Below are positions 18,850 through 39,002 of a stretch of DNA of 64,000 nt, one piece after another. Where the stretch lies: the sequence record OR670491.1. One strand, 5' to 3'. The position numbers and the translations under genes were made by a program. The notes beneath the pieces are model-generated. The model searched no databases, was not told the origin of the DNA, and saw only the letters and a list, made by a program, of their open reading frames with translations. Position 1 is the first letter of the stretch. Each line of letters begins with the position of its first letter.

Positions 18850-18925
18850 GTAACTATGCACCCGGTGGGCTTGAGTCTTTCTCGACTTGATGGAACTATT
18901 ATACAGTACTGAAAAAATAAAGCAA
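18850..18925 (-). promoter_or_regulatory. leftward promoter followed by CCCA-GGGTGC element
   Basis: minus strand TTGCTT-16-TATAAT then AAGCCCACCGGGTGCATAGTTAC. Confidence 0.65.
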
Positions 18926-19300
18926 TACCCTGGAAGCAAAAAAGTTTTAATTAATTTGCTTGCTATCCTGGGCCGGACTATGGTACTATATTTCAGTACT
19001 GAGAAAGTGCGTTTACCTGCTAGGGTGCGGGAGTGTATCCTTTTTTTATATCTTGAATTTTGGACGGATCTTCCCACCCCCTGGGGTATCCGCTTTCTCG
19101 CGTCTATGTAGTAATTATACGCTTTTTCAGGATCAAGTCAATACCTAAAAACAAAATAATTGAAAATAATTTAACGCGTTTAAACGGCCCGTAACGCCCT
19201 GGAATGATTAGAATGGTGCAAATGTATAGCTTAGGTGTATTAATGCGTTAGAATGCGTCTGAGGCCGTTTTATGGGGTGTAGTAGTGATTTGGTTGATTC

Positions 19301-19465
19301 AGTACTGAATAATAGTACTCCTATATAGAAAGATAGTTCCCCTGGATTGATTCAGTACTGAATGATAGTACTGAATAATAGTACTCCTATATAGAAAGAT
19401 AGTTCCCCTGGATTGATTCAGTACTGAATGATAGTACTGAATAATAGTTCCCCTATATAGAAAGA
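19301..19465. repeat. 66-bp tandem repeat, about 2.5 copies
   Basis: units start at 19301, 19367, 19433; first two units carry three AGTACT each. Confidence 0.9.
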
Positions 19466-19579
19466 AAACTATTTTAAAAGTATTTGTAGAAAGTACTTGC
19501 ACAGTACTGATAAAAGCGTATAATGTTTTACATCGAGAGCGGGAACTCTTCCCGCTACACTTTAAGAGAGATTAATACG

Positions 19580-19942
19580 ATGGCGACTCAAATCACTAAA
19601 ATCATTGCTAACCTGGTTAACTTCCGCGACGATATGAAAGATCTTCCGGCGGCAACGGTTAAAACTCACATTGACGCATACCGCGAACTGATTAAAATGC
19701 TGCCGCTTAAGCGTGAACAATACGCCGCCACCGTGATGCTTGATGCGATGATCCATAAGATGATCGCCAGTGATTTAACGATGGCTTATCAGTATATGGG
19801 TGAATTGTTCGCGGTGTATAGTAAACCAGTACCAGGAATGGAAAGTACAGAAGTATTACACGGTTTAAATTTAAAACAAGATGCATGGGATAATATGCCT
19901 CGTTTCCTGGTATGGGCTGACAGTGGCAAAATTTACGAATAA
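19580..19942 (+). CDS. hypothetical protein
   Basis: ATG 19580 behind promoter/stem-loop cassette. Confidence 0.75.
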   Translation: MATQITKIIANLVNFRDDMKDLPAATVKTHIDAYRELIKMLPLKREQYAATVMLDAMIHKMIASDLTMAYQYMGELFAVYSKPVPGMESTEVLHGLNLKQDAWDNMPRFLVWADSGKIYE

Positions 19943-20034
19943 GTTAAAAATTAGTTTGACAGTACTGAATAAAAGCGTATAATGTTTTACATCAGGTGGG
20001 GAATAGTTCCCCACTATATAAGAGGATTAAAAAA

Positions 20035-20274
20035 ATGGCTAAATCAAAAATGTTCTTAGGTCACAAAAATAAAACTCATTGGAATGTAAGCCTTTGGATT
20101 AATAACGATGAGGGATTGTATCGGTTGGCCCAGGACTTTATTAACGATAGCACTAATCGCAATGATGCGGCCCGTCATATGATGTTATTTTTAGAACAGA
20201 CTGGACAAGATAAAACACCGGACGGATTCAAATATAGCACTACTGCGATCCGTGCGGCAATGGTAGGAATGTAA
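20035..20274 (+). CDS. hypothetical protein, paralog of 22076..22315
   Basis: GHKNKTHWNVSLWINN ... TPDGFKYSTTAIRAAMVGM shared. Confidence 0.8.
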   Translation: MAKSKMFLGHKNKTHWNVSLWINNDEGLYRLAQDFINDSTNRNDAARHMMLFLEQTGQDKTPDGFKYSTTAIRAAMVGM

Positions 20275-20360
20275 TAGAATATATTTAAAGTACTATCATT
20301 TTTTTGCGATAGTACTTTATAATAGTGTTTTATTCATACACCAACGATAAGGGCAACAGC

Positions 20361-20627
20361 ATGAATATTAAGTATTTTGCGACGCGTGAACAAGCTCGGA
20401 TCGCCGCTCGCCAGGACGGGGCAACGTTTAAAGATATGGGCGTACAATCGGAACGTGGTAAACGTTGGGCCATTGTAAAGCGTAGTACCGCCAGATCATT
20501 ACAGTACTGGTTAGCGGCCTTAAAAAGTCCCGATAGTGTATCGCGTCGAGTGGTAGAAATAAAGCTCGACCGAAAGGGCAACCGCGTGACCGTGTACCGT
20601 ACTAAAAAGATAGCAGTACTTGAATAA
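20361..20627 (+). CDS. hypothetical protein, paralog of 32821..33225
   Basis: FATREQAR...FKDMG...GKRWA...DRKGNRVTVY shared. Confidence 0.8.
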   Translation: MNIKYFATREQARIAARQDGATFKDMGVQSERGKRWAIVKRSTARSLQYWLAALKSPDSVSRRVVEIKLDRKGNRVTVYRTKKIAVLE

Positions 20628-20714
20628 AAAGTACTTGCAAACTATGTTTAATGGCGTATAATGTTTTACATCGAGAGCGGGAACTCTTCCCGCCTATAAC
20701 CTGGAGTAATAAAA

Positions 20715-20945
20715 ATGACTAATATGTATATGACTGAAGTTAAAACCGTAAAAGATACTACCACGAATAAAACTACTTACTTACAGCGGATCTGCGGTGT
20801 ATGGCAACGTATCAGCAAATCAAAGTACTTTAAATTAACATCATATGCAAATCGTTCGGATTCATTCAGTACTGAAATAAAAGGTAATAAAGTACACCAA
20901 TACGGCACTTATTATTATTACAGCCTGGACGCGATTGCAGTATAA
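20715..20945 (+). CDS. hypothetical protein
   Basis: own promoter cassette, GGAG RBS. Confidence 0.7.
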   Translation: MTNMYMTEVKTVKDTTTNKTTYLQRICGVWQRISKSKYFKLTSYANRSDSFSTEIKGNKVHQYGTYYYYSLDAIAV

Positions 20946-20975
20946 GCAGTTTACAAATCTTTACAATTGCCGGTA

Positions 20976-21056
20976 TTGACTTATTTTGTCAGTACTGGCA
21001 TAATGTATTCATTGGCAGATAAGCCGTAGCCCATAGGGTGCGGGAGTGTATCTATA
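20976..21056 (+). ncRNA. orphan promoter + CCCA-GGGTGC element (candidate short ncRNA or operator)
   Basis: TTGACT-17-CATAAT then TAGCCCATAGGGTGCGGGAGTGTATCTAT; no ORF. Confidence 0.4.
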
Positions 21057-21071
21057 GAAAAATTAGTTTAG

Positions 21072-21148
21072 TATAGTTACAATTGTGCACCCGGTGGGTT
21101 AGCTGTTGTCATGGGGTATATTATGCCAGTACTTGATAATTCTGTCAA
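21072..21148 (-). ncRNA. orphan leftward promoter + CCCA-GGGTGC element
   Basis: minus strand TTGACA-17-CATAAT then CTAACCCACCGGGTGCACAATTGTAACTAT; converges on previous unit. Confidence 0.4.
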
Positions 21149-21230
21149 TACTTTTTTTTTACTATTCAGTACTGAAAACTATTTTTAAAAAGTACTTGCA
21201 AACTATGTTTAAAGGCGTATAATGTTTTAC

Positions 21231-21985: not shown

Positions 21986-22075
21986 TTTAAAAAGTACTTG
22001 CAAACTAAGTTTAAAAGCGTATAATACTTTATATCGAGGCGGGGAGTGGTTCCCCGCTCAAACGAGGATTTAAAA

Positions 22076-22315
22076 ATGGCTAGTACTAAAACTTACAACG
22101 GACACAAAAACAAAACTCATTGGAATGTAAGCCTTTGGATTAATAACGGTGAGTCATTGTATCGGCTTGCTCAAAGTTGCATCGCACAAAGTAGAACTAA
22201 AGATATTGCTGCGGAATGTATGTACCGCAGATTAAAAGCCAACGGTACTACTACAACGCCGGACGGCTTTAAGTATAGCACTACTGCGATCCGTGCTGCA
22301 ATGGTTGGAATGTAA
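22076..22315 (+). CDS. hypothetical protein, paralog of 20035..20274
   Basis: shared N- and C-terminal blocks. Confidence 0.8.
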   Translation: MASTKTYNGHKNKTHWNVSLWINNGESLYRLAQSCIAQSRTKDIAAECMYRRLKANGTTTTPDGFKYSTTAIRAAMVGM

Positions 22316-22719: not shown

Positions 22720-22941
22720 ATGGCTAATATCACTACTCTTTCCCAACTGGAAGCACTGGTGAAATCTATGCGGGAACATGCCGACAAAATCGGCGTACAA
22801 GATCCAGCCGTTTGCTTCTGCGACGAATTGAATGATGATACCCTGGTAATAGCAGAAGTCCAGGACGTTTCTAACTATTCCTCGCGTTACACTGGCGGCG
22901 TAGCAAATAAAGGCGACTTCTGTTTATACCTTACAAAATAA
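22720..22941 (+). CDS. hypothetical protein
   Basis: ATG 22720 behind cassette. Confidence 0.7.
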   Translation: MANITTLSQLEALVKSMREHADKIGVQDPAVCFCDELNDDTLVIAEVQDVSNYSSRYTGGVANKGDFCLYLTK

Positions 22942-22994
22942 CAACGCGGGGAGATAATAACTCCCCGTTACTTTTTCAGTACTGAATCATTTAA

Positions 22995-23076
22995 TAGACG
23001 GATCTCGGCACCCGGTGGGTTAGTGACTGTTTCGTCTTGATGTAGTAATTATGCCAGTACTGGATGCACTTGTCAA
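22995..23076 (-). ncRNA. orphan leftward promoter + CCCA-GGGTGC element
   Basis: minus strand TTGACA-17-CATAAT...CTAACCCACCGGGTGCC. Confidence 0.4.
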
Positions 23077-27451: not shown

Positions 27452-27541
27452 AAAAGTGGTTGACTCCGGTCAGCCATTTTGCTATTATATATTCATTGAG
27501 AGATAGCTCACTAGCCCACAGGGTGCATAAGTGTATCTATT
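27452..27541 (+). ncRNA. hairpin-embedded orphan promoter + CCCA-GGGTGC element
   Basis: TTGACT-17-TATTAT inside hairpin; CTAGCCCACAGGGTGCATAAGTGTATCTAT. Confidence 0.4.
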
Positions 27542-27671
27542 ATATGAGTATTGAGTACTGAAAACTATTTTAAAAGTATTTGTAGAAAGTACTTGCAAAC
27601 TATCTCAATAAGCGTATAATGTTTTACATCGAAAGGGGAAACGGTTTCCCCTGATAATAAGGAAACAAATC

Positions 27672-28013
27672 ATGACTATCTCAATTGCTCAATCTAACTT
27701 TGAAAACGAAATCATCGCCCAGGCACTGCGTTTAAATGATGGTCGGGCCGAAATTAATTACGGTTTCAATTCAGGCGGTTGTGAAAAATATCAGTACTTT
27801 GTAACGGCTGATGGCGGTGTCCTGGGTATCAATACAGTTATTGTAAACATCCAAAAAATTAATTTCAATGATCCAGACGATAGCCAGTTTTACATCACTG
27901 GCGTAGACGTGAACTATGAGGATGACTCACTAACTGATGATCACACTGGTGAGAAGTTAGAGAGTGCATACGGTGAAGATGATTATCAGTCAGTACCGGA
28001 AGATTTTGAATAA
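27672..28013 (+). CDS. acidic hypothetical protein
   Basis: own cassette; YFVTADGG and ESAYGE motifs. Confidence 0.8.
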   Translation: MTISIAQSNFENEIIAQALRLNDGRAEINYGFNSGGCEKYQYFVTADGGVLGINTVIVNIQKINFNDPDDSQFYITGVDVNYEDDSLTDDHTGEKLESAYGEDDYQSVPEDFE

Positions 28014-28110
28014 TATTAAAAAAATAGTTTGACAATAGATTATAGTACTGTATAATAGTTTACATCAAGGGGAGAAAAACTTCTCCCCACTAACAGAGAG
28101 AGAAAACAAA

Positions 28111-28323
28111 ATGGCTAATATCTGCACTGTACTGAAAAATGCAAAACAAGTTTTATTTTCTGATCACGATCATTTAAACAAGGATATTACTGGCGTTCGG
28201 AATATCAAAGATGTAAAAAGTGTTATGGGTATCTATTGCAATATGAAACGTGTTGGAACGTTCGGCGACAAAGTACTATACCAGGCAGGGGATTACAATT
28301 TTACACTGACTATCATTAACTAA
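28111..28323 (+). CDS. hypothetical protein
   Basis: own cassette. Confidence 0.7.
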   Translation: MANICTVLKNAKQVLFSDHDHLNKDITGVRNIKDVKSVMGIYCNMKRVGTFGDKVLYQAGDYNFTLTIIN

Positions 28324-28415
28324 AAATATATTACCAGTACTATTAAATCTATTGACAACGTTTGATAGTACTGACATAATAACTTTTATCAACTACACTA
28401 CTAAGGAATTAAAAA

Positions 28416-28595
28416 ATGGCTATCATCGCAAAAACTGAAATCGTTGGTCTGGATTCTATCATCATGACGTTTGAAGATCAAAAAGGTATGTATGTAGTTT
28501 CATATGGTGATTATGTTCGGGAGTATGAAACGGTAGACGAAGCCTTTGAAAGTTATATTCGCCAGGTGAATAAAGCATACGACGACTACCGCTAA
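28416..28595 (+). CDS. hypothetical protein (59 aa)
   Basis: own promoter, AAGGA RBS; translated by hand. Confidence 0.6.
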   Translation: MAIIAKTEIVGLDSIIMTFEDQKGMYVVSYGDYVREYETVDEAFESYIRQVNKAYDDYR

Positions 28596-28685
28596 AATAT
28601 ATTACCAGTGCTATTGACAAAGTTTGATAGTACTGTATAATAAGTTTTATAAACAGTAGTTAACTTAACCTAAGAGAGAAATAAA

Positions 28686-28829
28686 ATGATCGCACTGGAT
28701 TCATTCATCGACGCAGTACTGGCAAAAACTGGCGAGGATCTGACCGCAGAACAATACGCGATGATCGAGCAATGTCAGCAAAACGGTAAATCGGTGAAAG
28801 ATACTGTTAAGATTATCCGCAAGATGTAA
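28686..28829 (+). CDS. hypothetical protein (47 aa)
   Basis: own promoter; translated by hand. Confidence 0.55.
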   Translation: MIALDSFIDAVLAKTGEDLTAEQYAMIEQCQQNGKSVKDTVKIIRKM

Positions 28830-28835
28830 GATTAT

Positions 28836-28863
28836 AGCCCACTGGTTAACGCTGGTGGGCTTT
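28836..28863 (+). terminator. intrinsic terminator
   Basis: AGCCCAC...GTGGGCTTT. Confidence 0.6.
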
Positions 28864-28928
28864 AATCCTTTACCCTATACAATGCCAGTACTCAACCGTT
28901 TATCTCGTTAGAATGCGTTACAGGACGT

Positions 28929-29132
28929 TTGACAATGATTAGCATGAAATCAGTACAAAAACAAATAGAAACATTATCAAAAATTAAACGTAAACAGTAC
29001 TCGTTAGAATATACAATCAATGGTAACTATCATCTAATGAAAGAGAATAATTTTATCGTCATTGATGAATCATTGCAAGTTATTAGTATAGTACTGAAAG
29101 CATTAATCAATGACAGAAAAAAATTAAAATAA
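28929..29132 (+). CDS. hypothetical protein
   Basis: 67 aa ORF, weak RBS. Confidence 0.4.
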   Translation: MTMISMKSVQKQIETLSKIKRKQYSLEYTINGNYHLMKENNFIVIDESLQVISIVLKALINDRKKLK

Positions 29133-29136
29133 TCTA

Positions 29137-29220
29137 TTGACAATATCCTCCAGTACTGGCATAATACTTACATCAAGACGAGAACGTCGCTAACCCATAG
29201 GGTGCACAAATGTAACTATA
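29137..29220 (+). ncRNA. orphan promoter + CCCA-GGGTGC element
   Basis: TTGACA-17-CATAAT...CTAACCCATAGGGTGCACAAATGTAACTAT. Confidence 0.4.
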
Positions 29221-29227
29221 TAATATC

Positions 29228-29300
29228 GATCAATAAATGATCAAAAAAGTACTGGATCAATTTAGCATAAGGCGTATAATTCTGATCAATTCTTGATCAA
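29228..29300 (+). promoter_or_regulatory. GATC cluster around a TATAAT box
   Basis: GATCAA at 29228, 29239, 29255, 29284, 29295; TATAAT 29275-29280. Confidence 0.6.
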
Positions 29301-29461
29301 AGGCAATATACGCAGTTGAATTTATATAGACAGTACAAAGGCGTTACTATCCGTGGTAATGCTGGTGGATATGTAGTATCATATGGTTTGAATAAGATAA
29401 ACACTAGTAGTATTATTGTAGCATTACAGTACTATAGTATTTTTATAATGAGGTTAAAATA

Positions 29462-29719
29462 ATGGCAGTAGGATACGCGAAAGACGGGGCCGAACAAGAC
29501 GAGATTCACGCAGTGATTCAGGCCGCCGTTAACCACGCTAGAAAGCAAATTAACGCACAAAGAGAATCACTGGTACATTGCCTCGACTGCGGCGATAAAA
29601 TCCCTGAGAATCGACGCCAGGCCGTTATAGGGTGCATGTATTGTATTACTTGCCAGGAGGATCATGATAGTACTTTTAAAAGAGATCCGCGTAATTGTTG
29701 GCATAGATCTATGAGATAA
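29462..29719 (+). CDS. DksA/TraR family C4 zinc-finger protein (YbiI-like)
   Basis: CLDCGDKIPENRRQAVIGCMYCITCQ; N-term G-Y-A-x-D like YbiI. Confidence 0.9.
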   Translation: MAVGYAKDGAEQDEIHAVIQAAVNHARKQINAQRESLVHCLDCGDKIPENRRQAVIGCMYCITCQEDHDSTFKRDPRNCWHRSMR

Positions 29720-29782
29720 AAAGTATTGACAGTACTGAAAGATAGTGTATAATGTTTTATATCTTAACTGAGGATAGTAATC

Positions 29783-30139
29783 ATGGGAATACAACATATC
29801 ACGCGTACTACTGACAATGGCGAGATCACTGGTTATCAGGTACAGGGCAAAGTAGCACAATTGCAGTACTGGTTTGTTAAACGTGGAATCATTGCACCGG
29901 ATCTTGATTATGACCGTGTAGCGTTTATTGATTCTCTTTATGTTGATCCTGATAGTCGGGGCAATGGTGAAGGTAACGAATTAATGAATGCCTTTATTGA
30001 TGCCGCCGATGATTCAGATTGTATCATCTTAGAATGCGATACGGGAGAAGATAACGCCTTTAATCTTAAAGAATGGTACGAAGGTTTCGGATTCGAGGTA
30101 CTGATCGATAGTGAATATCCTATCATGATTTTATCATAG
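29783..30139 (+). CDS. GNAT family N-acetyltransferase
   Basis: motif A LYVDPDSRGNGEGNELM and C-terminal WYEGFGF. Confidence 0.8.
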   Translation: MGIQHITRTTDNGEITGYQVQGKVAQLQYWFVKRGIIAPDLDYDRVAFIDSLYVDPDSRGNGEGNELMNAFIDAADDSDCIILECDTGEDNAFNLKEWYEGFGFEVLIDSEYPIMILS

Positions 30140-30217
30140 TACTTGCATTTAGTTTTCAGTACTGTTATAGTACTTGCATCAAGGGGAAACATCTTCCCCT
30201 ACTAAGAGGAAATAAAA

Positions 30218-30406
30218 ATGGAAAACTTATCAAGTATTTTAGTACAAGATGATTTCGGTAATCCTGGAAGTGCTATCATTGTTCGGGGCAATAAAGCAAC
30301 GTTTGTTATTGCTGGTGGACCCGTACAGCGTAGCATTAAAAATAATGCTGTTACCATTAATAATGTACGCTATCGCTTAGATAAAGAATTAATTCATAAA
30401 CTGTAA
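30218..30406 (+). CDS. hypothetical protein
   Basis: own cassette. Confidence 0.7.
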   Translation: MENLSSILVQDDFGNPGSAIIVRGNKATFVIAGGPVQRSIKNNAVTINNVRYRLDKELIHKL

Positions 30407-30433
30407 TATTAATTTAATAGAGGATAACAATAA

Positions 30434-30757
30434 ATGTACATTCATACTACTATCACAAAGGAAGTCCGTTGCCAGTTCGAAAGTATTCCGGGCGTATGTT
30501 TCATCACTGGTACGTTTTCCCCTGGTGATCGTGATAATCCAGTACTGTTACAATTACGCCATCCATCATGGGATAAAGCATTTGATCTACCGTTGAATGA
30601 ATTCGCAACTACTGCTGAAAAGTACATTAAAAATATTCGCGAGAATGATCGACTATTCATTAATGCTTTTAGTGATGCCGCGTTAAGTGAGATCCATGCT
30701 GTATTGGTTGCAATCATGGAATCAATGGAGAAAACTATATTCAAACAAGGTGAATAA
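30434..30757 (+). CDS. hypothetical protein
   Basis: GAGG RBS. Confidence 0.75.
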   Translation: MYIHTTITKEVRCQFESIPGVCFITGTFSPGDRDNPVLLQLRHPSWDKAFDLPLNEFATTAEKYIKNIRENDRLFINAFSDAALSEIHAVLVAIMESMEKTIFKQGE

Positions 30758-30840
30758 AAACTATTGACAATGCAATCCAGTACTGTATAATAGTTTACAT
30801 GAAGGAGAGAAATGATTCTCCCCACTAAGAGGAAAGAAAA

Positions 30841-31053
30841 ATGCAAGGTCAACTAATCGTTCGTAAATGGTCTGATACTAACGAAAAACCGTGGGATGTA
30901 CAATACATCGCCCCAAATGGTGAATCCAGATATCAACCAGGTGTAACGCATAGTACTGAGCAATTCGCCGCCGCTCATCGCGAACGTCTGTTACAATCAA
31001 TGCAGCAAGGTTCCGGTGAAAAATTCATTCAGGATCATTGGCTGAAAGATTAA
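30841..31053 (+). CDS. hypothetical protein
   Basis: own cassette. Confidence 0.75.
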   Translation: MQGQLIVRKWSDTNEKPWDVQYIAPNGESRYQPGVTHSTEQFAAAHRERLLQSMQQGSGEKFIQDHWLKD

Positions 31054-31139
31054 AAAGTACTTGCACAGTACTGAATAAAGTGTATAATGTTTTATATCGG
31101 AAGGGGAATAGTTCCCCTCCGAACAAAGAGGAAAGTATA

Positions 31140-31313
31140 ATGGTCCAGGTAGAATTAACAGTACTGAAAGATCTGTTTTATCGGATTGGTACTACTGGCG
31201 AATATCCGAAGGGTGATAATGCAAAACTTTACGTATCACTCGACTTATGGCAACGCGAACAATTAGCAACGGCCTGGCGTAAAGGCAAAGCAGATAGCGA
31301 GGTGAAAGCATGA
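31140..31313 (+). CDS. hypothetical protein
   Basis: ATG 31140 behind cassette. Confidence 0.65.
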   Translation: MVQVELTVLKDLFYRIGTTGEYPKGDNAKLYVSLDLWQREQLATAWRKGKADSEVKA

Positions 31314-31459
31314 AAGAATTCTTATTTGAAGTAGTGTTTCAAGGTGTCGGTAATAACCAACTGATTCGATCAAGTGGTTATAATGTTAACCAGGCATGGA
31401 ATAACATTAAACAAATGTACCCGAACGCTATCACATATCGCAACCCGAAAGAAGTTTAA
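31310..31459 (+). CDS. hypothetical protein (49 aa)
   Basis: ATGA overlap, GAGG RBS; translated by hand. Confidence 0.55.
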   Translation: MKEFLFEVVFQGVGNNQLIRSSGYNVNQAWNNIKQMYPNAITYRNPKEV

Positions 31460-31470
31460 AAATAATTGAA

Positions 31471-31554
31471 AAAGGGATTGACTCCGGTCAGTCCCTTTGT
31501 TATTATATACGCATAGAAACAAATTAGCCCACCGGGTGCATAAATGTATCTATT
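31471..31554 (+). ncRNA. hairpin-embedded orphan promoter + CCCA-GGGTGC element
   Basis: TTGACT-17-TATTAT; TTAGCCCACCGGGTGCATAAATGTATCTAT. Confidence 0.4.
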
Positions 31555-31631
31555 GTTTGCTGGTGGCTAGTACTGAAAACTATTTTTAAAAAGTACTTGC
31601 ATTGTACTTAGAATCAAGTATAATGTTTTAC

Positions 31632-31704
31632 ATCAGGACGGGGAACGAAATAAGTAACCCCGTTAAGTAGTCCAGGAGTAAGACATACGAAAAACTCCCC
31701 TGAT
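31632..31704 (+). ncRNA. candidate structured small RNA / leader, copy 2
   Basis: closely similar to 21231-21305 with all three stems retained. Confidence 0.55.
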
Positions 31705-31773
31705 AAAATAGTTTGACAATAGAAAGTAAACGAGTATAATACTTACATCAACCACTGATAAGGAAACATAAAA

Positions 31774-32049
31774 ATGCGGATTCTACTGACAGCTAACGAA
31801 ATCGAACAAGTACTGACTACTAATCTGGAACAATGGAAACGTGAAGCAGATATCCAGGCGGTTCAATGCCTTAACGATAAGTTAACGCCAGATGACTTAA
31901 GCACGATTGTTGATCCACAATTTTATGAAGATATTCACGACACGTCTTTAAGCGTCGAGGATGTACTTGATAAGCACTACATTGATACTGATTTACATGT
32001 TTACGGTCGTAAAAACTTTATCACTATTCACGACATTTACAATACTTAA
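31774..32049 (+). CDS. acidic hypothetical protein
   Basis: own promoter and RBS. Confidence 0.75.
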   Translation: MRILLTANEIEQVLTTNLEQWKREADIQAVQCLNDKLTPDDLSTIVDPQFYEDIHDTSLSVEDVLDKHYIDTDLHVYGRKNFITIHDIYNT

Positions 32050-32135
32050 GTATTGACAAAGTATCTTAGTACTGTATAATAGTTTACATCAAGGGGGGGA
32101 ATGGTTCCCCTCCTAACTAAAAGAGAGAAATAAAA

Positions 32136-32318
32136 ATGGCTAAGTGCACTATCTGTAATAAAGAAATAGTATTAGTTCCAAGTGCCCGTGAACGTGCCGC
32201 TCGGTTCGGTGGCAAAGCGTCAGACTATACAAAAATGTTTACTACCCATACAGCTTGCCAGGTAGCAAAACGTTCACAAGAAAGCGTAGAATTAATGCGT
32301 AAACTTTCCAAAAAATAA
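32136..32318 (+). CDS. small putative metal-binding protein
   Basis: CxxC ... HxxC. Confidence 0.7.
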   Translation: MAKCTICNKEIVLVPSARERAARFGGKASDYTKMFTTHTACQVAKRSQESVELMRKLSKK

Positions 32319-32406
32319 GTATTGACAAAGTATCTTAGTACTGTATAATAGTTTACATCAAGGGGGGGGGAATGGTTCCCCTCCTAACAAAGAGAGAGAA
32401 ATAAAA

Positions 32407-32730
32407 ATGGCTATGATCCTTACCCAGAAAGTAGAACTGAAAATTGTAACCTCCTTTGACATTAAAGTTAATCGGTGGACTGATAGCCACGGCAATACTT
32501 ACCACTCCTGCTACGTGTCCGCATTGATTGGTGATCGCTGGGAAGACCTGGGACACGAAACCTTTACATACGGTTACGGCACACAAGGCGAGTACACGGG
32601 TTTAGAAATCATTAAGGAAACTGTAATAGGTTTCAACCCGAAAGAGAAAGTACTACACAGAATTGAGAAAGAGATCAACAAAGAAATTACAGTTCGCTAC
32701 TACGATGTAAAACGTAAGAAAGACATGTAA
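32407..32730 (+). CDS. hypothetical protein, paralog of 25558..25881
   Basis: shared motifs; upstream cassette almost identical to that of 32136. Confidence 0.8.
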   Translation: MAMILTQKVELKIVTSFDIKVNRWTDSHGNTYHSCYVSALIGDRWEDLGHETFTYGYGTQGEYTGLEIIKETVIGFNPKEKVLHRIEKEINKEITVRYYDVKRKKDM

Positions 32731-32820
32731 TAGAATCCATTTAAAGTACTATTTGACATTGCCCAGATAGTACTTTATAATAGACTCTAACTTGTAGTAC
32801 TAATTAACTTAACTAATAGG

Positions 32821-33225
32821 ATGTACACCATGATTACTAAATTCTTCGCTACCCGTGAACAAGCTCGCATCGTTGCCCGTGAGGAAGGTGAAACATTTAA
32901 AGACATGGGTAAAGATTCTCCTACTGGTAAACGCTGGGCGGTACAGTTCAAAGAGATCTCTGATATTGTGAATTCACCTGAGCCTGTACTTACAGCAGCA
33001 GAACTAAAGCAAGCTCAAGAACTGGCTGAAGTACTGAACGCTCAAGATGACTTCTTGAAAGGTTCTGATATTGAAGTTACAGTTAACGCAAATGCATGGA
33101 CTCACGCGGATCACCTGGCAAACCTTAAGCGTCCAAGTGAACTGATTCGTAACCAGAAAGAGATCCGTCATGACCGTAAAGGAAACCGTGTTACCGTATA
33201 CAGTAAACGCCGCCAGGTTATCTAA
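32821..33225 (+). CDS. hypothetical protein, paralog of 20361..20627
   Basis: shared motifs with a longer central insert. Confidence 0.8.
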   Translation: MYTMITKFFATREQARIVAREEGETFKDMGKDSPTGKRWAVQFKEISDIVNSPEPVLTAAELKQAQELAEVLNAQDDFLKGSDIEVTVNANAWTHADHLANLKRPSELIRNQKEIRHDRKGNRVTVYSKRRQVI

Positions 33226-33289
33226 TACCTTGCAGTACTAACCAACACGGCGGGAAGACAGTTCCCGCCTTTTTTATAGGACAAACAAA

Positions 33290-33544
33290 ATGATTAAGGT
33301 TCAACTATATAAAGATAACATCTTACGGGTACACTATAAAGCACCTCAGAGAATCATCACAAAGGCCGTACAGCTTGCTAATGAGTTTATTAATGGTAAC
33401 CTATTACCTAGGAAGTTAAGCAACGGGAAACTGCGTGTAATCGACGTGGACACTAACAACAGGATAGTAATCGAGAACACAGGAAAGATAAACCTTTATG
33501 AGCATCAACAATACAATAAGAAAATAAAACTAATATCACGTTGA
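33290..33544 (+). CDS. hypothetical protein, possibly ParE/RelE-like fold
   Basis: RKL...VIDV...RIV...EHQQYN pattern; weak. Confidence 0.55.
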   Translation: MIKVQLYKDNILRVHYKAPQRIITKAVQLANEFINGNLLPRKLSNGKLRVIDVDTNNRIVIENTGKINLYEHQQYNKKIKLISR

Positions 33545-33597
33545 CAGTACTCAATTGTTTTAGTACTATGTACACATACCAACACGGGAGAAACAAA

Positions 33598-33816
33598 ATG
33601 AAATTATCTAAAATCGAAAAGAAAACTATTGATGAAGCAGTTAAGCACGGTTATACCTTTCGTAATGATTCACATTTTACCAATTTTCAACAAGGGTATC
33701 GTACTATTAAAAAACTAATTGACAAAGGTTTATTAGTTGAAGTCAATAACGGTAACGGTATCGAGTATCAACCAACACAGGACGCATTTTATTTTAAGAA
33801 ATATAATATTATCTAA
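33598..33816 (+). CDS. hypothetical protein, possible winged helix
   Basis: TIKKLIDKGLLVEV; own promoter. Confidence 0.6.
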   Translation: MKLSKIEKKTIDEAVKHGYTFRNDSHFTNFQQGYRTIKKLIDKGLLVEVNNGNGIEYQPTQDAFYFKKYNII

Positions 33817-33874
33817 TTGACAGTACTCAAATGTTTTAGTACTATATGTACATACCAACACGGGGGGAAACAAA

Positions 33875-34117
33875 ATGATTACTTTAGAAAAACGTATCAA
33901 AGAAACTACATCGCTGGTGGAACTGTTAACAGTACTCAAATGTAAAACAGCACCATTCAGCACGCCGGACTTTATTAATATGGTTGATGTTAATGGTCGC
34001 TATCGTATCACGGTCGAACAAGGAGCGGCGAAAGTATTCAGTACTAAAAACACGAAGGAAGTGATCCACGCCGTTAATGTTAAAAAAGTAGTTGCCATTG
34101 ATAGTAAAGTACTGTAA
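33875..34117 (+). CDS. hypothetical protein
   Basis: promoter cassette duplicated from 33541. Confidence 0.7.
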   Translation: MITLEKRIKETTSLVELLTVLKCKTAPFSTPDFINMVDVNGRYRITVEQGAAKVFSTKNTKEVIHAVNVKKVVAIDSKVL

Positions 34118-34148
34118 TATAGTTTCATTAACTCAAGGAGATCATGCA

Positions 34149-34733
34149 ATGCGTAATTATACAAAATTCATCCGTACACTGTCAGAAATGGAAACCAACA
34201 AAGAGATCCTTTCAGCTTGTCGGTTAGCTGACCTGGAGATCATCGGTGCTGGTTCTTCCCGTATAGTTTTCGCTTTAAATGATCGGTTAGTGATTAAGGT
34301 CGCGAATTGTGATGCGGGTGTAGAACAAAATGAAACTGAATGTAAGGTATGGAATTTTTTAGACTATGACCGCCCTCAGTTGAAACAGTACTTTGCAAAG
34401 GTGCATATGCATTTATGCGATCCTGATAATATGTTTATCGTTATGGATCGGTTGAGTACTGCAAGCAAAGGCAGTGTGAAGCACGTAAACGCGTGCAATG
34501 AATTAAAGTACAATATTAAACGTAATGCAATCGAACGCCAGCACCGCTTTGCTGATGCACTACAACACGTTGATGATACATTATCAACACTAACGATAAG
34601 AGATATCAGAAAACAGAATATCGGCCAGGATCGTAATGGACTTATTAAAGTACTTGATTACGGTTTAACCAGCAATATCTGGAATCAGTACTATAAAAAG
34701 CGTGATGTGGCAGCAAGTAAGGTAACACGATAA
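34149..34733 (+). CDS. protein kinase-like (Ser/Thr kinase fold) protein
   Basis: Gly loop IGAGSSRIV, VIK lysine, QNETE helix C, catalytic RDIRKQNIG, LDYG; AAGGAG RBS before ATG 34149. Confidence 0.85.
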   Translation: MRNYTKFIRTLSEMETNKEILSACRLADLEIIGAGSSRIVFALNDRLVIKVANCDAGVEQNETECKVWNFLDYDRPQLKQYFAKVHMHLCDPDNMFIVMDRLSTASKGSVKHVNACNELKYNIKRNAIERQHRFADALQHVDDTLSTLTIRDIRKQNIGQDRNGLIKVLDYGLTSNIWNQYYKKRDVAASKVTR

Positions 34734-34745
34734 AAAAGATTAAAA

Positions 34746-34834
34746 AAAGGGATTGACTCCGGTCAGTCCCTTTGCTATTATATATCCATTGAGAGATAAC
34801 TCACTGACCCATAGGGTGCGGAAGTGTATCTATT
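34746..34834 (+). ncRNA. hairpin-embedded orphan promoter + CCCA-GGGTGC element
   Basis: TTGACT-17-TATTAT; CTGACCCATAGGGTGCGGAAGTGTATCTAT. Confidence 0.4.
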
Positions 34835-34955
34835 ATATAAGTATTCAGTACTGAAAACTATTTTTAAAAAAGTACTTGCATTGTACTTAGAATCAAGTAT
34901 AATGTTTTATATCGAGAGGGGGAAATGGTTCTCCCTGGCAATAAGGAATAAAATC

Positions 34956-35177
34956 ATGACTACAATGACTTGCATTTACGCTTCCAATCGTCTGAATGAT
35001 GCGGCCTTTAATGTTGATTCAGAATATCAATGTTATCGGGATGAAAATAAAAAAGTTTTTGTAGTTGATAATAATGGTTTCCATATTGAATTACAATCCG
35101 GCTTCACTGGTGTTGATGGTAAATCAGTATGGGGCGTACAGGATGATAAAGGCACATATCATTTTAAACGTAATTAA
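34956..35177 (+). CDS. hypothetical protein
   Basis: ATG 34956 behind cassette. Confidence 0.7.
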   Translation: MTTMTCIYASNRLNDAAFNVDSEYQCYRDENKKVFVVDNNGFHIELQSGFTGVDGKSVWGVQDDKGTYHFKRN

Positions 35178-35260
35178 GTATTGACAAAGTATATCAGTAC
35201 TGTATAATAGTTTACATCAAGGGGAGAATAGTTCTCCCCGATACTAAAAGGAATAAAATC

Positions 35261-35665
35261 ATGACTACTACTAATCTTGCTCGGAATATCGCCAACGATA
35301 AAAATCATGCTGCAATGGTTGTTGGTTACATTGAAGCTATGCAATTCAGTACTGTACACAATGAGAACGGCGATTACCTGGAAGATTATGAATTATCAGA
35401 GCAAGCCCATCAAGCGGCAGTGATTGCATGTTCTCGCTTCATTGAGAAACACGGTAATGATCTGGAAGTAGTTCGCGGTATGTTTATTGATTACGGTTAT
35501 GAGCAAGCTGGTCATGATCTGTTCCTTACCCGCGAAGGTCACGGAACTGGTTTTTGGGATCGTGGTTTAGGTCACTATGGCGATGTATTCACGAAGTACT
35601 GCGAAGAAATCAACGTTTGCGATCCCTATGTAGGCGATGATAATCTAATCTATATGGGCGAATAA
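35261..35665 (+). CDS. conserved hypothetical phage protein (GHDxxLTRxGHGxGFWDR)
   Basis: own cassette; His/Gly-rich motif. Confidence 0.8.
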   Translation: MTTTNLARNIANDKNHAAMVVGYIEAMQFSTVHNENGDYLEDYELSEQAHQAAVIACSRFIEKHGNDLEVVRGMFIDYGYEQAGHDLFLTREGHGTGFWDRGLGHYGDVFTKYCEEINVCDPYVGDDNLIYMGE

Positions 35666-35752
35666 AAGTATTTGACAAAGTATATCAGTACTGTATAATA
35701 GTTTACATCAAGGGGAGAATAGTTCTCCCCGATACTAAAAGGAAACAAAATT

Positions 35753-36025
35753 ATGTCCAGCTACTCCGCTACTATGATCATTAAAGATATGAACGGTAAT
35801 CCTACTTCTGCTGGTGGATCATTTGGAAACATTAATTTAGATGGTCGGTTATCCATGCAATCAGCAATCGATGCAGCGAAAGAAGTTTTTAAGAATGAAT
35901 GTACTGTTAGTAAGCTGGATTATATGGGATTTGCTATCGAAAAAACTAATCGTTTTGTGGACTACAAAAAACCACTGATGATTGATACTAACCTGAAAGC
36001 AAACGAAGTGGAGTACTTATTATGA
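35753..36025 (+). CDS. hypothetical protein
   Basis: cassette almost identical to that of 35261. Confidence 0.75.
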   Translation: MSSYSATMIIKDMNGNPTSAGGSFGNINLDGRLSMQSAIDAAKEVFKNECTVSKLDYMGFAIEKTNRFVDYKKPLMIDTNLKANEVEYLL

Positions 36026-36213
36026 CAGTTGAAGAAGTTAAAAAAGTACTGGCAGTACTACGCTATCATAATCATTGTAAGGTGAAGAATGATCCTGATT
36101 ATCTTGATTCATCCCTGGAAGAGGATACACTACAAGCAATAAGCCATATGCAAACATTAGCAAAGCGTATGACCGAAAAGAATAGACCGGACTATATCGG
36201 AAATAAAATTTAA
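36022..36213 (+). CDS. hypothetical protein
   Basis: overlapping start, GGAG RBS. Confidence 0.6.
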   Translation: MTVEEVKKVLAVLRYHNHCKVKNDPDYLDSSLEEDTLQAISHMQTLAKRMTEKNRPDYIGNKI

Positions 36214-36299
36214 AAAGTACTTGCATTGTAGTTAGATTAACGTATAATGTTTTACATAGAGCGGGGGAATAGTTCTCCCGCCAGTCCAGGAGATACACC

Positions 36300-36563
36300 A
36301 TGAACACTATCGAAATCACTATCAATGCACACGTATACGACAACGTAATCATGCAAACTACTATGACCGCTAATGATACCAGTACTTTGCGGAATACTGT
36401 TATTAGTGCTGTATGTGCCGCTATCGGTGATGTCGCCCTGGAAAATGCAAAACACGTAAACGATGGTTTCACTATGTGCAAACGTGATAACGCAAAACAT
36501 ATCATCGTGGAAGGTTACGGCGGTGTAGAATTTAATGTTTATATGAAAAAAGTACTTGCATAA
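36300..36563 (+). CDS. hypothetical protein
   Basis: own cassette. Confidence 0.75.
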   Translation: MNTIEITINAHVYDNVIMQTTMTANDTSTLRNTVISAVCAAIGDVALENAKHVNDGFTMCKRDNAKHIIVEGYGGVEFNVYMKKVLA

Positions 36564-36630
36564 TAACTAAAACAAAGTATAATGTTTTGCATAGGGGGAG
36601 ATATCCTCCCCCACTAAAAGGAGTAATAAA

Positions 36631-36855
36631 ATGGCTAACTTTGATGAACTGATGCGGGAAGTAGCTAACCTGGCAGAAGAGAAGAAATCATTCGATTCTA
36701 TCTATAACACCGCTCACCGTGATTCAGTACTGGCATGTAACCAGGATCAAAAAGATGAACTAATCGCCACCTATCATGAAGCATGGAAGTACTACCGACA
36801 ATGGGAGAAAGAAGAAAGTGAGTCTACCATTGACGGCCTCAATAATCTAATCTAA
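36631..36855 (+). CDS. acidic helical hypothetical protein
   Basis: own cassette. Confidence 0.75.
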   Translation: MANFDELMREVANLAEEKKSFDSIYNTAHRDSVLACNQDQKDELIATYHEAWKYYRQWEKEESESTIDGLNNLI

Positions 36856-36931
36856 AAGTTTTATTTCAGTACTATTGACATAGCTTGATAGTACTGATGT
36901 AATAACTTTACTAACTACAAGGGGAAACATA

Positions 36932-37189
36932 ATGGATCAGTTCACACAATATCGGGTAAATCATCAAGCTATGGCCTACGTAGAAGACCATAAAACGTTA
37001 CCAGTACTGCAACCAGTTAAAGGCCATATCTATCGTGCAATGTCGTGGTGTACGGCCCAGGATGGCTATAAAACCGTAGCCGTTGGTATGTATTGCGGTA
37101 ATGGTGAATGGTTTGATCCAAATAATCCGGTAGCCATTGACAGTACTGAAAAAATGAAATGGGCCGACTACATCGAAGATATTTCATAA
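36932..37189 (+). CDS. hypothetical protein
   Basis: own promoter. Confidence 0.7.
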   Translation: MDQFTQYRVNHQAMAYVEDHKTLPVLQPVKGHIYRAMSWCTAQDGYKTVAVGMYCGNGEWFDPNNPVAIDSTEKMKWADYIEDIS

Positions 37190-37278
37190 AAACTATTTGA
37201 CAGTACTAACCAGTAATGTATAATGTTTTACATAGAGCGGGGAATAGTTCTCCCGCCAATAGTTTGGAGTAAAACATT

Positions 37279-37479
37279 ATGTCTATCGCTATCGCCCTGG
37301 TTGAAGTACTGAAAGAAGCTAAAGCCAACCAGATCGACGTAAAGATCCAGGAACTACAAAACGGCTTAATCGGCTGTACTTGTACCGCTGGTGGAGCGGC
37401 AGACTATCGAGAACACGAATCACTCGAATCACTGGTTCGGTATCTTACCATGATCGTTGATGATTGGAGAATCATCTAA
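37279..37479 (+). CDS. hypothetical protein
   Basis: own cassette. Confidence 0.7.
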   Translation: MSIAIALVEVLKEAKANQIDVKIQELQNGLIGCTCTAGGAADYREHESLESLVRYLTMIVDDWRII

Positions 37480-37495
37480 CAAAAAAAGAATAAAA

Positions 37496-37576
37496 AAAGG
37501 GATTGACTCCGGTCAGTCCCTTTGCTATTATATACGCATAGACAAAAACTAGCCCACAGGGTGCATAGGTGTATCC
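37496..37576 (+). ncRNA. hairpin-embedded orphan promoter + CCCA-GGGTGC element
   Basis: TTGACT-17-TATTAT; CTAGCCCACAGGGTGCATAGGTGTATCC. Confidence 0.4.
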
Positions 37577-37725
37577 AAAATATATAGTTAATAACGGTGA
37601 GTAACTATCTGCTGGTGGAACTAAAACTATTAATAAAAAAGTATTGACAAAGTATATCAGTACTGCAATAATGTATCTCGTAGGGCGGCAATGGTGCGAC
37701 GGCCCACAAAGTTAGGAGATTCAAA

Positions 37726-38058
37726 ATGACTACTTCAATCGCTATCGTTAAAGCTTTCATCCGTACTAATGTTTCCTCTGTATTCATCGACGGCCTCGAC
37801 CGTAACGTAGAATACTCAATCATTATCGCACAAACGGCAAACGGTTCTCGGTACATCCTGAATGATAGTGAAGCAAATCACTACTACTTCACTAAAGCCA
37901 CTGGCTTTAAACGCATCGATGCTGATGTAGTATACGCTAAGATGAATAAGCTGGTAGACAAGATTAACGCTAAAGGTACTATAGATTTACAGTACTGGAC
38001 CGAAACCGATCCAGAATATGGATCTCACCGCTACCTGAATCCAGGTATCAAAATGTAA
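37726..38058 (+). CDS. hypothetical protein
   Basis: own promoter, AGGAG RBS. Confidence 0.75.
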   Translation: MTTSIAIVKAFIRTNVSSVFIDGLDRNVEYSIIIAQTANGSRYILNDSEANHYYFTKATGFKRIDADVVYAKMNKLVDKINAKGTIDLQYWTETDPEYGSHRYLNPGIKM

Positions 38059-38147
38059 AAAGTACTTGCATAGTACTTAGATTCATGTATAATGTTTTAC
38101 ATAGAGAGGGGGAAATGGTTCTCCCTCCTAAATTAAGGAGTATTGTC

Positions 38148-38549
38148 ATGACTTTTTCTATCAATTCTTATGCTGACGTTTTAGTACTGGCTCGGACTTT
38201 TGGTAAAGATGCACTGGAGTACGCTGTAAGTAATGGCACTATCCAACCGGAACAGTGCCGCATCATTGGAAACTGCAAACGTTGGGCGGTTTCCAATACT
38301 ATTGCACTGGAAAACTTCCACGATGGCAACAATGAATATTCTGTTGATGTAGTATTCGAAGCCGTTGATCTCGGCGGTATCTATAATACTAACCTGAATG
38401 ATGTGCGTATCGTTCGCACTGGGTTCGGTGCTTATGATGTATCTATTCGTGAAGCTATGAACACCGGATACATTAGCAAGGACTTACTTGCTCACATCAT
38501 GCAGCTGTGTACGGAACGTAACGAAGCACGCACTATCTTAGGACTGTAA
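38148..38549 (+). CDS. hypothetical protein
   Basis: ATG 38148 behind cassette. Confidence 0.75.
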   Translation: MTFSINSYADVLVLARTFGKDALEYAVSNGTIQPEQCRIIGNCKRWAVSNTIALENFHDGNNEYSVDVVFEAVDLGGIYNTNLNDVRIVRTGFGAYDVSIREAMNTGYISKDLLAHIMQLCTERNEARTILGL

Positions 38550-38573
38550 GCGTTACACATCACCAAACATCAT

Positions 38574-38595
38574 AGGCCGCCTTGTAGCGGCCTTA
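38574..38595 (+). terminator. possible terminator
   Basis: AGGCCGC-6-GCGGCCT, short T tract. Confidence 0.5.
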
Positions 38596-38617
38596 ACTAT
38601 ATCAGGAGTACATACAC

Positions 38618-38827
38618 ATGATCTATACAGTATACAGCGTTCTAGGCACTATTGCAGGCGTACATGATAACGTCGATAGTGCTATGCGTACAGTACTGCA
38701 ACAGGTTCCACTAAAGCCTAAGACCATTAAGCAGATGACAGCACGACTAACCAGGGCGACGGCTGGCGTGGAAGTATGGCAGGACTATGGGGATACACAG
38801 ATAATCGTAAGCGTAACGAAGGATTAA
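38618..38827 (+). CDS. hypothetical protein
   Basis: AGGAG RBS. Confidence 0.65.
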   Translation: MIYTVYSVLGTIAGVHDNVDSAMRTVLQQVPLKPKTIKQMTARLTRATAGVEVWQDYGDTQIIVSVTKD

Positions 38828-39002
38828 TGCGTAAAAGGATTTAGTACTGATGCATTTTAAATTTTAGTCATTTTTTAAAAACTACGCAAAAAAACTAAAC
38901 CAATACCTTAGCGTAATAGTTTAGGGATTGGACTATGTTTTTATGCGTGGGGGGGCTAGTATGGGGTAACCTTAGCTCGATCGTGAAGTAGCCCATAGGG
39001 TA

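Follow-up and report, generated by a model that had tools for sequence, protein, structure and literature searches.

Promoter-linked repeats in the direct terminal repeat of an Asteriusvirus jumbo phage as candidate genes for early small non-coding RNAs

Analysis of a 64,000-nt stretch of sequence record OR670491.1 (the window, to which all positions refer) revealed a family of short repeated units, each consisting of a predicted sigma-70 promoter followed by a conserved non-coding element with a 12-nt core (CCCAYMGGGTGC). The window derives from an Asteriusvirus, a jumbo coliphage of approximately 350 kb from the PBECO4/121Q/G17 group, with JNE01 as the closest match (98% identity). Positions 17757 to approximately 38975 align with the annotated direct terminal repeat (DTR) of vB_Ec-M-J (positions 1 to 21525) at 90 to 97% identity. 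By this homology, the 18.8- to 39-kb block is the phage DTR of approximately 21 kb, which occurs twice in the packaged genome and was assembled once in the window, where both occurrences are collapsed to one copy. In the relative fEgEco12, a DTR of 20,993 bp was confirmed by restriction digests (PMC13070987). The GC content rises from 0.35 to 0.39 over the block, which contains approximately 60 small plus-strand genes; a promoter of its own precedes most of them, and many have a terminator. The DTR (17757 to 38975, no strand) holds all copies of the element except a relic at 38989.

The core occurs exactly nine times in the 64 kb, with 0 occurrences expected, and all nine lie between 18.8 and 37.6 kb (18858-, 21030+, 21087-, 23008-, 27515+, 29194+, 31528+, 34808+, and 37553+). 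The 30-nt pattern of an original prediction, made from the sequence alone, gave eight matches at up to three mismatches, compared to 0.00 expected (shuffled sequences gave none). A covariance model built from the copies of related phages found the nine positions again with E values of at most 4e-5. These results bear out the predicted dispersed family of promoters firing into a conserved non-coding element, in one block and in both orientations. Eleven copies had been counted in that prediction; nine are full copies and that at 19015(+) is degenerate, but that at 38989 is only a 13-nt relic, and a second degenerate copy at 19085(-), convergent with 19015(+), had been overlooked. The window total is nine intact copies, two degenerate copies, and one decayed relic. 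The prediction had also missed that the block is the DTR, that four promoters are composite terminator/promoter hairpins, and that the tail of the element can pair with GGGUGC in rivalry with the CCC/GGG hairpin.

All nine full window copies are preceded by a -35/-10 pair that scores 9 to 11 of 12 with a spacer of 16 to 17 nt and is close to the sigma-70 consensus. Transcription is predicted to start 14 to 22 nt ahead of the core, at the A of a conserved CAT. Clade-wide, 74 of 74 unique copies carry a -10/-35 pair, with the -10 box ending 21 to 30 nt ahead of the core. Two promoter types were distinguished among these copies. The ordinary type is TTGACA-17-CATAAT, frequently with CAGTACTG in the spacer. 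The composite type has its -35 box TTGACT within the 5' arm of a terminator-like hairpin whose U-tract contains the -10 box TATTAT (AAAGGGATTGAC-TCCG-GTCAGTCCCTTTGCTATTAT). Five window units have an ordinary promoter and four a composite one. The composite hairpins were located at 27453 to 27488, 31471 to 31506, 34746 to 34781, and 37496 to 37531, each with a stem of 10 to 12 bp and a UCCG loop. By analogy with the promoter-early stem-loops (PeSLs) of T4, which are composite terminator/promoter cassettes (PMC4122927, PMC2839356), such a sequence should halt upstream transcription and launch a new transcript. Paralogous units are approximately 90% alike over at least 85 nt.

Unit 1 (18844 to 18925, minus strand) fires leftwards from a -35 box TTGCTT (18925 to 18920) and a -10 box TATAAT (18903 to 18898) with a predicted start at approximately 18891. 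Its RNA has a 5' hairpin AGUC-GAGAAA-GACU (18887 to 18874), the core (18869 to 18858), and an atypical tail to 18844 (E=4e-5). The degenerate copy at 18994 to 19047 (plus strand) comprises a hairpin GUAC-UGAGAAA-GUGC (18996 to 19010), a core-like sequence CCTGCTAGGGTGC (19016 to 19028), and a tail (19029 to 19040) followed by T7 (model E=0.06); its GGGUGC/GUAUCC helix and T-run resemble a terminator (19022 to 19041). It is faced by the second degenerate copy at 19060 to 19141 (minus strand), with a promoter TTGACT-16-TATAAT (19141 to 19114), a hairpin CGC-GAGAAA-GCG, and a core CCCAGGGGGTGG (19085 to 19074). Units 2 and 3 form a convergent pair. Unit 2 (20976 to 21055, plus strand; -35 box 20976 to 20981, -10 box CATAAT 20999 to 21004, start at approximately 21011) gives an RNA with a hairpin UGGC-AGAUAA-GCCG, the core at 21030 to 21041, and a tail to 21055. 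Unit 3 (21073 to 21148, minus strand; -35 box 21148 to 21143, -10 box 21125 to 21120, start at approximately 21112) is without a 5' hairpin and has its core at 21098 to 21087 and its tail to 21073. Together, the two units (21026+/21073-) constitute an imperfect inverted repeat of approximately 180 bp, and a read-through RNA folds at -43.7 kcal/mol (z=-5.4). Unit 4 with its terminator (22947 to 23076, minus strand; -35 box 23076 to 23071, -10 box 23053 to 23048, start at approximately 23041) has a hairpin GAC-GAAACA-GUC, a core at 23019 to 23008, and a tail to 22994. An intrinsic terminator at 22967 to 22947 is common to this unit and to a convergent plus-strand gene ending at 22941, and the predicted RNA has approximately 100 nt.

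The remaining five units are on the plus strand. Unit 5 (27453 to 27540) starts with a composite hairpin (27453 to 27480) that contains the -35 box (27460 to 27465), followed by the -10 box TATTAT (27483 to 27488) and a predicted start at approximately 27495; its RNA comprises a hairpin UGAG-AGAUAG-CUCA, the core (27515 to 27526), and a tail to 27540. A second promoter (27593 to 27620) and a gene at 27672 lie downstream. Unit 6 (29137 to 29219; -35 box 29137 to 29142, -10 box 29160 to 29165, start at approximately 29172) has a hairpin GACG-AGAA-CGUC, a core at 29194 to 29205, and a tail to 29219, and the next annotated gene encodes a DksA/TraR-type zinc-finger protein (29462 to 29719). Unit 7 (31478 to 31553; -35 box 31478 to 31483, -10 box 31501 to 31506, start at approximately 31513), of the composite type, has a short A-rich leader, a core at 31528 to 31539, and a tail to 31553. 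Unit 8 (34753 to 34833; -35 box 34753 to 34758, -10 box 34776 to 34781, start at approximately 34788), also composite, carries a hairpin UGAG-AGAUAA-CUCA, a core at 34808 to 34819, and a tail to 34833. The last copy before the right DTR boundary is the composite unit 9 (37503 to 37578; -35 box 37503 to 37508, -10 box 37526 to 37531, start at approximately 37538), with a core at 37553 to 37564 and a tail GUAUCC to 37578. The site TAGCCCATAGGGTAT at 38989 to 39003 (plus strand), a 13-nt local match (E=0.21) just outside the DTR, overlaps the -35 box from which the next gene would be transcribed, and vB_Ec-M-J does not conserve it; it is probably a decayed relic and not a functional copy. A covariance-model match at 7046, without promoter and without core, was spurious.

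The predicted RNA begins with 1 to 5 unpaired nt and a hairpin of 3 to 5 bp. Comparison of the copies revealed 24 different complementary 5' stems (e.g., UGGC/GCCG, UGAG/CUCA, AGACA/UGUCU, GGAG/CUCC, ACCAC/GUGGU, and ACAAA/UUUGU) with purine-rich loops such as AGAUAA, GCGAAA, GAGAAA, and AGAACAA. The hairpin score was 8.7, compared to 4.8 in shuffled leaders, and in most copies the hairpin ends 4 to 5 nt before the core. MAFFT alone misaligned this hairpin, and a hand-registered alignment was used instead; all five pairs change on both sides, in the registered as well as in the model-fitted alignment. Approximately one-fifth of the copies have a short A-rich leader in place of the hairpin. A stem-loop near the 5' end shields bacterial RNAs from 5'-end-dependent decay, and by analogy the hairpin found here probably protects the RNA in the same way.

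The 5' hairpin is followed by YUAR and a second hairpin, R-CCC-AYM-GGG-U, which was the only structure returned by RNAalifold on the model-fitted alignment. Among 73 distinct model hits, two of the CCC/GGG pairs are invariant, while 72 hits have C-G as the third pair and one has a compensatory CCU/AGG; the closing pair is G-U in 37 and A-U in 34 of the 73. When the core was relaxed in a promoter-anchored search, few variants emerged in all, namely, one compensatory CCU/AGG, some CCU/GGG, and the tetraloops AUUA, GUAA, and UCAA. On the 3' side of GGGUGC, five mostly purine bases lead to a tail U-N-Y-R-Y-C-Y-R-U, whose variation keeps pairing with GGGUGC possible (Y opposite G, R opposite U). 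This alternative GGGUGC/GYRYYY helix is paired in 88.8% of cells, compared to 35 to 67% in slid registers, and it and the CCC/GGG hairpin are mutually exclusive. The alternative helix is the more stable of the two (-4 to -10 versus -3.7 kcal/mol) in copies with a UGUA-type tail, which include most window copies, and is unstable in the UCCG, UCUG, and UAUG tail types; its support consists of one-sided changes only. A second mini-hairpin described in the original prediction is the inner part of this longer helix. Its pairing is kept in the UGUA-type copies of the window, but the middle pair is broken in 21 of 52 copies clade-wide.

Other candidate structures and functions of the transcribed segment were rejected. 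A pseudoknot or closing helix joining the UCUAU tail to the 5' leader or to the hairpin loop, suggested by eye from AGAUA/UAUCU, AUAGA/UCUAU, and AGACG/CGUCU, was unsupported; the leader-tail duplex energy was -5.09 kcal/mol for cognate and -4.75 kcal/mol for non-cognate combinations, with a mean z of -0.38 relative to shuffled leaders. Tiny open reading frames (ORFs) that begin within the tail (AUG/GUG-UAU-CUA...) lack conservation from one tail type to another, and the purine run is too near them for a ribosome-binding site (RBS). CsrA-type GGA loops are present in a minority of copies (two of the nine in the window).

This anatomy bears on two explanations in which the DNA itself is the target. 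The first is a double-stranded site for a protein just past strong promoters, acting as a roadblock, an insulator, a polymerase trap, or a staged DNA-entry stop; one of two options in the original prediction was likewise a DNA site for polymerase arrest. The core is conserved as sequence and not by covariation, CCC-N3-GGG has dyad symmetry, convergent pairs lie at boundaries between leftward and rightward transcription, and the location in the terminal repeat would suit such a site. However, covariation in the 5' hairpin points to a fold of single-stranded nucleic acid, CUAR and UGC make the flanks asymmetric, and approximately twenty sites per genome presumably could not sink the polymerase pool of a cell. 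Nothing specific was found in support of polymerase arrest, and the shape-keeping stem, together with an orientation of the element to its promoter that is always the same, argues against a purely double-stranded site. We consider this explanation very unlikely. In the second, the transcripts would prime or open DNA, so that promoter, G-rich RNA, and AT-rich stretch would constitute R-loop origins of replication or recombination comparable to T4 oriF and oriG, the primary origin of T7, and ColE1. The RNA is G- and purine-rich (GGGUGC plus the purine pentamer) and is followed by AT-rich DNA, and convergent pairs could start two leading strands. Against this, 7 to 11 origins per repeat copy would be unusual, and a weak, sub-threshold hint of RNase H in a neighboring DTR protein was unconfirmed. 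An origin function therefore appears most improbable.

To place the unit among other phages, IMG/VR was scanned with a core-N5-TGTA pattern. The unit was found in RaK2 (345,809 bp), GAP32 (358,663 bp), CBB (378,379 bp), 121Q, fHe-Yen9-04, and several metagenomic contigs of approximately 355 to 366 kb; matches in small unrelated contigs look like chance. In every large genome, all matches lie inside one block of at most 20 kb, with 7 to 11 copies per genome; the genomes so counted include RaK2, GAP32, CBB, and two contigs of approximately 360 kb. In CBB, copies were detected within both terminal repeats, each of which has 22,456 bp (PMC5259590). The covariance model found 76 copies (73 distinct) in 208 kb of the relatives' loci. 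Strong conservation across several genera was thereby established, where its lack had been named as a reason to abandon the original prediction. CBB has only 33 to 38% of its proteins in common with GAP32, PBECO4, 121Q, and RaK2 (PMC5259590), and since the core is kept at this distance, the non-coding unit is more conserved than most of the surrounding genes. Outside this group, a core-plus-tail pattern gave eight scattered, single, chance-like matches in 185,579 bacterial and archaeal species genomes, none of them in Enterobacterales, and 5,426 E. coli genomes searched with blastn were free of matches. Mimicry of a host RNA or repeat, such as an RNA anti-CRISPR or an antitoxin RNA mimic, was rejected because no host copies were found; this excludes near-identical mimicry alone.

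A further explanation is that the unit is a PeSL-like promoter/terminator and homologous-recombination cassette that shuffles small DTR genes, with the transcribed element as a passenger or near-functionless leader. The composite hairpins of four window promoters agree with the definition of PeSLs (PMC4122927), paralogous units are highly alike, and gene modules are flanked by units. The pentamer block swaps between close relatives (ATAAG to AGGAG and CGAGA to ATAGA), which suggests conversion between copies. T4-type PeSLs are similar in being short, repeated, conserved cassettes placed among small early genes where the genome of a large myovirus is plastic. However, their definition (a stem-loop terminator plus a sigma-70 early promoter) fits the four composite window units and not the five with ordinary promoters. 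PeSLs as described consist of a promoter and terminator only, whereas the window units add a conserved hairpin-core-tail segment of approximately 45 nt with an invariant core, and convergent pairs are a trait of the units and not of PeSLs. A passenger would not keep a near-invariant 12-nt core across genera that share a third of their proteins (PMC5259590) while the stem varies freely, and the conserved convergent-pair geometry would need another explanation. A role mainly as such a cassette is therefore quite unlikely.

The downstream context was classified for 70 unique copies from the window and its relatives. Twenty copies stand in convergent pairs, in which the distance from core to core is fixed at 57, 68, or 75 nt, and another 14 have an intrinsic terminator that starts 45 to 52 nt past the core; this terminator is shared with an opposite-strand gene end at window copy 22994- and in the relatives inspected by eye. 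These 34 copies are unable to serve a downstream gene. Seven more have a U-rich run directly after the tail, so that a feature that would define the RNA end (terminator, U-run, or convergent twin) was recognized in 41 of 70 copies. All of these contexts are represented in the window, where copies 21073-, 22994-, and 19085- oppose plus-strand genes. The original prediction had noted neither an RBS nor an ORF behind the element, which holds up to the next promoter, but each of the six window plus-strand copies has a second promoter downstream, and the next annotated gene begins 150 to 340 nt past the core. For the five at 27511 to 37549, the order downstream is second promoter, then gene.

The same contexts bear on a cis-acting role, in which the nascent RNA, or a hairpin of the non-template DNA, at approximately +15 to +45 would modify, pause, or terminate the polymerase that has just departed. 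This could be an antitermination like that of lambda nut or HK022 put or an attenuator that chooses between the CCC/GGG and the GGGUGC/tail hairpin. The position relative to the transcription start is fixed, the DTR is full of short gene cassettes, many with a terminator, copies occur every 1.4 to 4.5 kb, and the outermost copies (18850- and 37549+) point out of the DTR to flanking unique DNA. The sequence is compatible with both mutually exclusive helices, the alternative being paired far more often than in slid registers, and in some copies a U-run follows the alternative helix (e.g., window 19022 to 19047). The resemblance to nut (boxA plus boxB) and put lies in a short structured RNA just 3' of early phage promoters in a terminator-rich region, with a small purine-loop stem (boxB-like) beside a conserved block. 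However, the 20 copies in head-on pairs and the 14 facing a convergent gene end over a shared terminator would produce only antisense RNA on read-through, while nut and put run in the same direction as the genes they serve. No boxA-like or ops-like sequence accompanies the units: boxA (CGCUCUUA-like) occurred 59 times versus 53.5 expected and RfaH ops (GGCGGTAGNNTG) 18 times versus 17.3 expected, both at chance level, with no boxA adjoining and no ops within a unit. No N-like protein was identified, and 7 to 11 copies per repeat contrast with one or two nut or put sites per genome. The alternative helix, moreover, shows one-sided changes only and is unstable in approximately half of the copies. 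An intrinsic terminator within the element was found in none of the nine full window copies, the exceptions being the degenerate 19015(+) and a few copies of relatives with a U-run after the tail. We regard a cis-acting role, the strongest of the rival explanations, as unlikely.

The main reason to take the short RNA, or its synthesis as such, for the product is that approximately half of the copies cannot be gene leaders. A reading at the level of RNA is favored because the 5' hairpin covaries and because 34 of the 70 copies end in a convergent partner or a nearby terminator; the small-RNA option of the original prediction is retained to this extent, while the decoy role that it proposed, against a host defense or RNA-binding protein, is hypothetical. 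The most probable explanation, although at somewhat less than an even chance, is that the units are a multicopy family of abundant early small non-coding RNAs in the DTR that are recognized by a conserved putative factor. We infer that the promoters fire and that the RNAs are short, abundant, and active in trans on a protein. In the proposed mechanism, the host sigma-70 RNA polymerase would fire from the near-consensus promoters once this DNA enters the cell. The transcript would open with the 5'-terminal stem-loop, conserved in shape and free in sequence, which would stabilize the RNA. The business end (YUAR-CCC-AYM-GGG-UGC, the purine-rich pentamer, and the pyrimidine-rich tail) would have two alternative folds, namely, the CCC/GGG triloop hairpin and the GGGUGC/GYRYYY hairpin. 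The 3' end would be set by a terminator approximately 50 nt on, by a U-run directly after the tail, or by a convergent twin through collision or a hairpin, while approximately 40% of the copies would instead read into the next promoter and gene. The near-invariant core would be read base-specifically by a conserved partner, either an Enterobacterales-wide host factor or a conserved phage protein, and many copies with strong promoters would lead to a high early RNA dose. A more specific and more doubtful proposal is that RaK2-like phages flood the cell with this RNA within minutes from approximately twenty copies per genome and, by means of its invariant CCC-AYM-GGGUGC hairpin, capture or reprogram a factor that is conserved in Enterobacterales. 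This candidate factor could be RNA polymerase itself, as for put or 6S RNA, an RNA chaperone or nuclease, or a defense protein.

Several points weigh against the small-RNA reading. Approximately 40% of the copies, including most plus-strand copies of the window, are without a recognizable 3' end signal and continue into an UP element and the promoter of the next gene. Energetically, the folding does not stand out (z of about -1 to -1.8), both core hairpins are marginal at -3.7 kcal/mol, and the invariance of the core is partly a product of how the copies were collected. The fairly regular spacing along the DTR would suit a cis-acting role equally well. Among 38 DTR proteins examined, no RNA-binding or antiterminator protein was recognized. 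A literature search found nothing on Asteriusvirus transcription, and promoter activity is a prediction here.

Comparison with known RNA families revealed no described counterpart, as had been supposed. A search of the whole window against Rfam 15 gave 0 matches at the gathering threshold, with only chance-level hits (E of approximately 1 to 10), well short of the threshold, around the copies; ARAGORN found 0 tRNA or tmRNA genes in the window, and no paper on the motif was found in the literature. A precedent in location comes from the related Pseudomonas jumbo phage PA5oct, for which transcriptome sequencing detected two abundant non-coding RNAs of 236 and 451 nt from the terminal repeat, accounting for 2 to 5% of phage reads (PMC7318152). 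Highly expressed, ORF-less RNAs from a long terminal repeat count in favor of the small-RNA reading. The PA5oct RNAs are unrelated in sequence and come from two loci, and no copy of the core is present in the PA5oct repeat; homology was rejected. Qrr1-5, CsrB/C, and prophage anti-sRNAs are similar in being paralogous genes with a conserved RNA segment, variable flanks, strong promoters of their own, and partly terminators of their own. CsrB, in contrast, has GGA-loop repeats, and many of the present copies are without a terminator. As judged by sequence features, the criteria for a free small RNA gene find a promoter in all copies and the 3' end feature in the 41 copies mentioned above. Phage small RNAs, promoter-proximal RNA elements, and PeSL-type cassettes are already known kinds; the combination of 7 to 11 dispersed copies, restriction to the DTR, an invariant core beside a covarying 5' hairpin, convergent pairs, and a possible two-state fold is novel.

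If the proposed early flood of RNA that captures or reprograms a conserved Enterobacterales factor is true, it would be a phage RNA effector of a new class, able to adopt two folds, and if the RNA acts on a host factor, an RNA effector would join the mostly protein-based tools of host takeover and anti-defense. RaK2-group jumbo phages are phage-therapy candidates in which approximately 80% of the genes are without a known role and none of the early regulation has been described. The element is the most conserved feature of their fast-changing DTR and is common to phages that infect Escherichia, Klebsiella, Cronobacter, Pectobacterium, and Yersinia and have only about one-third of their proteins in common. 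The predicted starts, a 12-nt core to mutate, and the covariance model provide a precise and cheap experimental handle on the activity of these phages during the first minutes of infection.

Few of the proteins encoded in the DTR are recognizable. These are a ParE-like toxin-domain protein (33290 to 33544, E=6e-11), the DksA/TraR zinc-finger protein mentioned above, a GNAT acetyltransferase (29783 to 30139), and several with domains of unknown function, including two DUF7249 paralogues (19996 to 20274 and 22046 to 22315). The other approximately 30 DTR proteins scanned matched no Pfam family.

The center of the convergent pair in some relatives (L004 8050 to 8136, L041 6060 to 6139, and L007 1248 to 1334) contains a palindrome AATGATAATCATT, which is absent from the window pairs and resembles the core of the E. 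coli Fur box. Within the window, the palindrome AGTACT occurs 307 times versus 22.3 expected (13.7-fold), the next palindrome being only 1.9-fold enriched, and CAGTACTG occurs 61 times versus 1.2 expected. AGTACT was found in coding and non-coding DNA, inside and outside the DTR (e.g., 4623, 11039, 18139, 20990, 29151, and 34846), within the spacers of promoters (CAGTACTGGCATAAT), joined directly to -35 boxes (AAAAAGTACTTGCA), immediately past many elements, and in hairpins that resemble terminators (GCCAGTACTGGAGTACTGGC); the 4-kb bin at 44 to 48 kb contains a single occurrence. A phage protein may bind or modify this site. The palindromic hexamers CCATGG (0 versus 9.2 expected), AGGCCT (0 versus 5.9), and AGCGCT (0 versus 4.4) are missing from the window, which fits restriction-site avoidance.

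The left DTR end (17757 to 17800) opens with a hairpin GGCAGA-GGAA-GTCTGCC and a T-run, soon followed by AATCA/GTAATCA repeats. The right boundary (window 38920 to 39003), defined by homology to vB_Ec-M-J position 21525, is flanked on one side by a sequence resembling a decayed composite promoter (GGGATTGGACT) and on the other by the decayed core TAGCCCATAGGGTAT, and the genome end may have been set inside a former copy of the unit. Three tandem repeats of approximately 66 bp (GATTGATTCAGTACTGAATGATAGTACT...CCTATATAGAAAGATAGTTCCCCTG), each with AGTACT motifs, occur at 19300 to 19500, in the gene-free segment that separates the first convergent pair from the first plus-strand gene.

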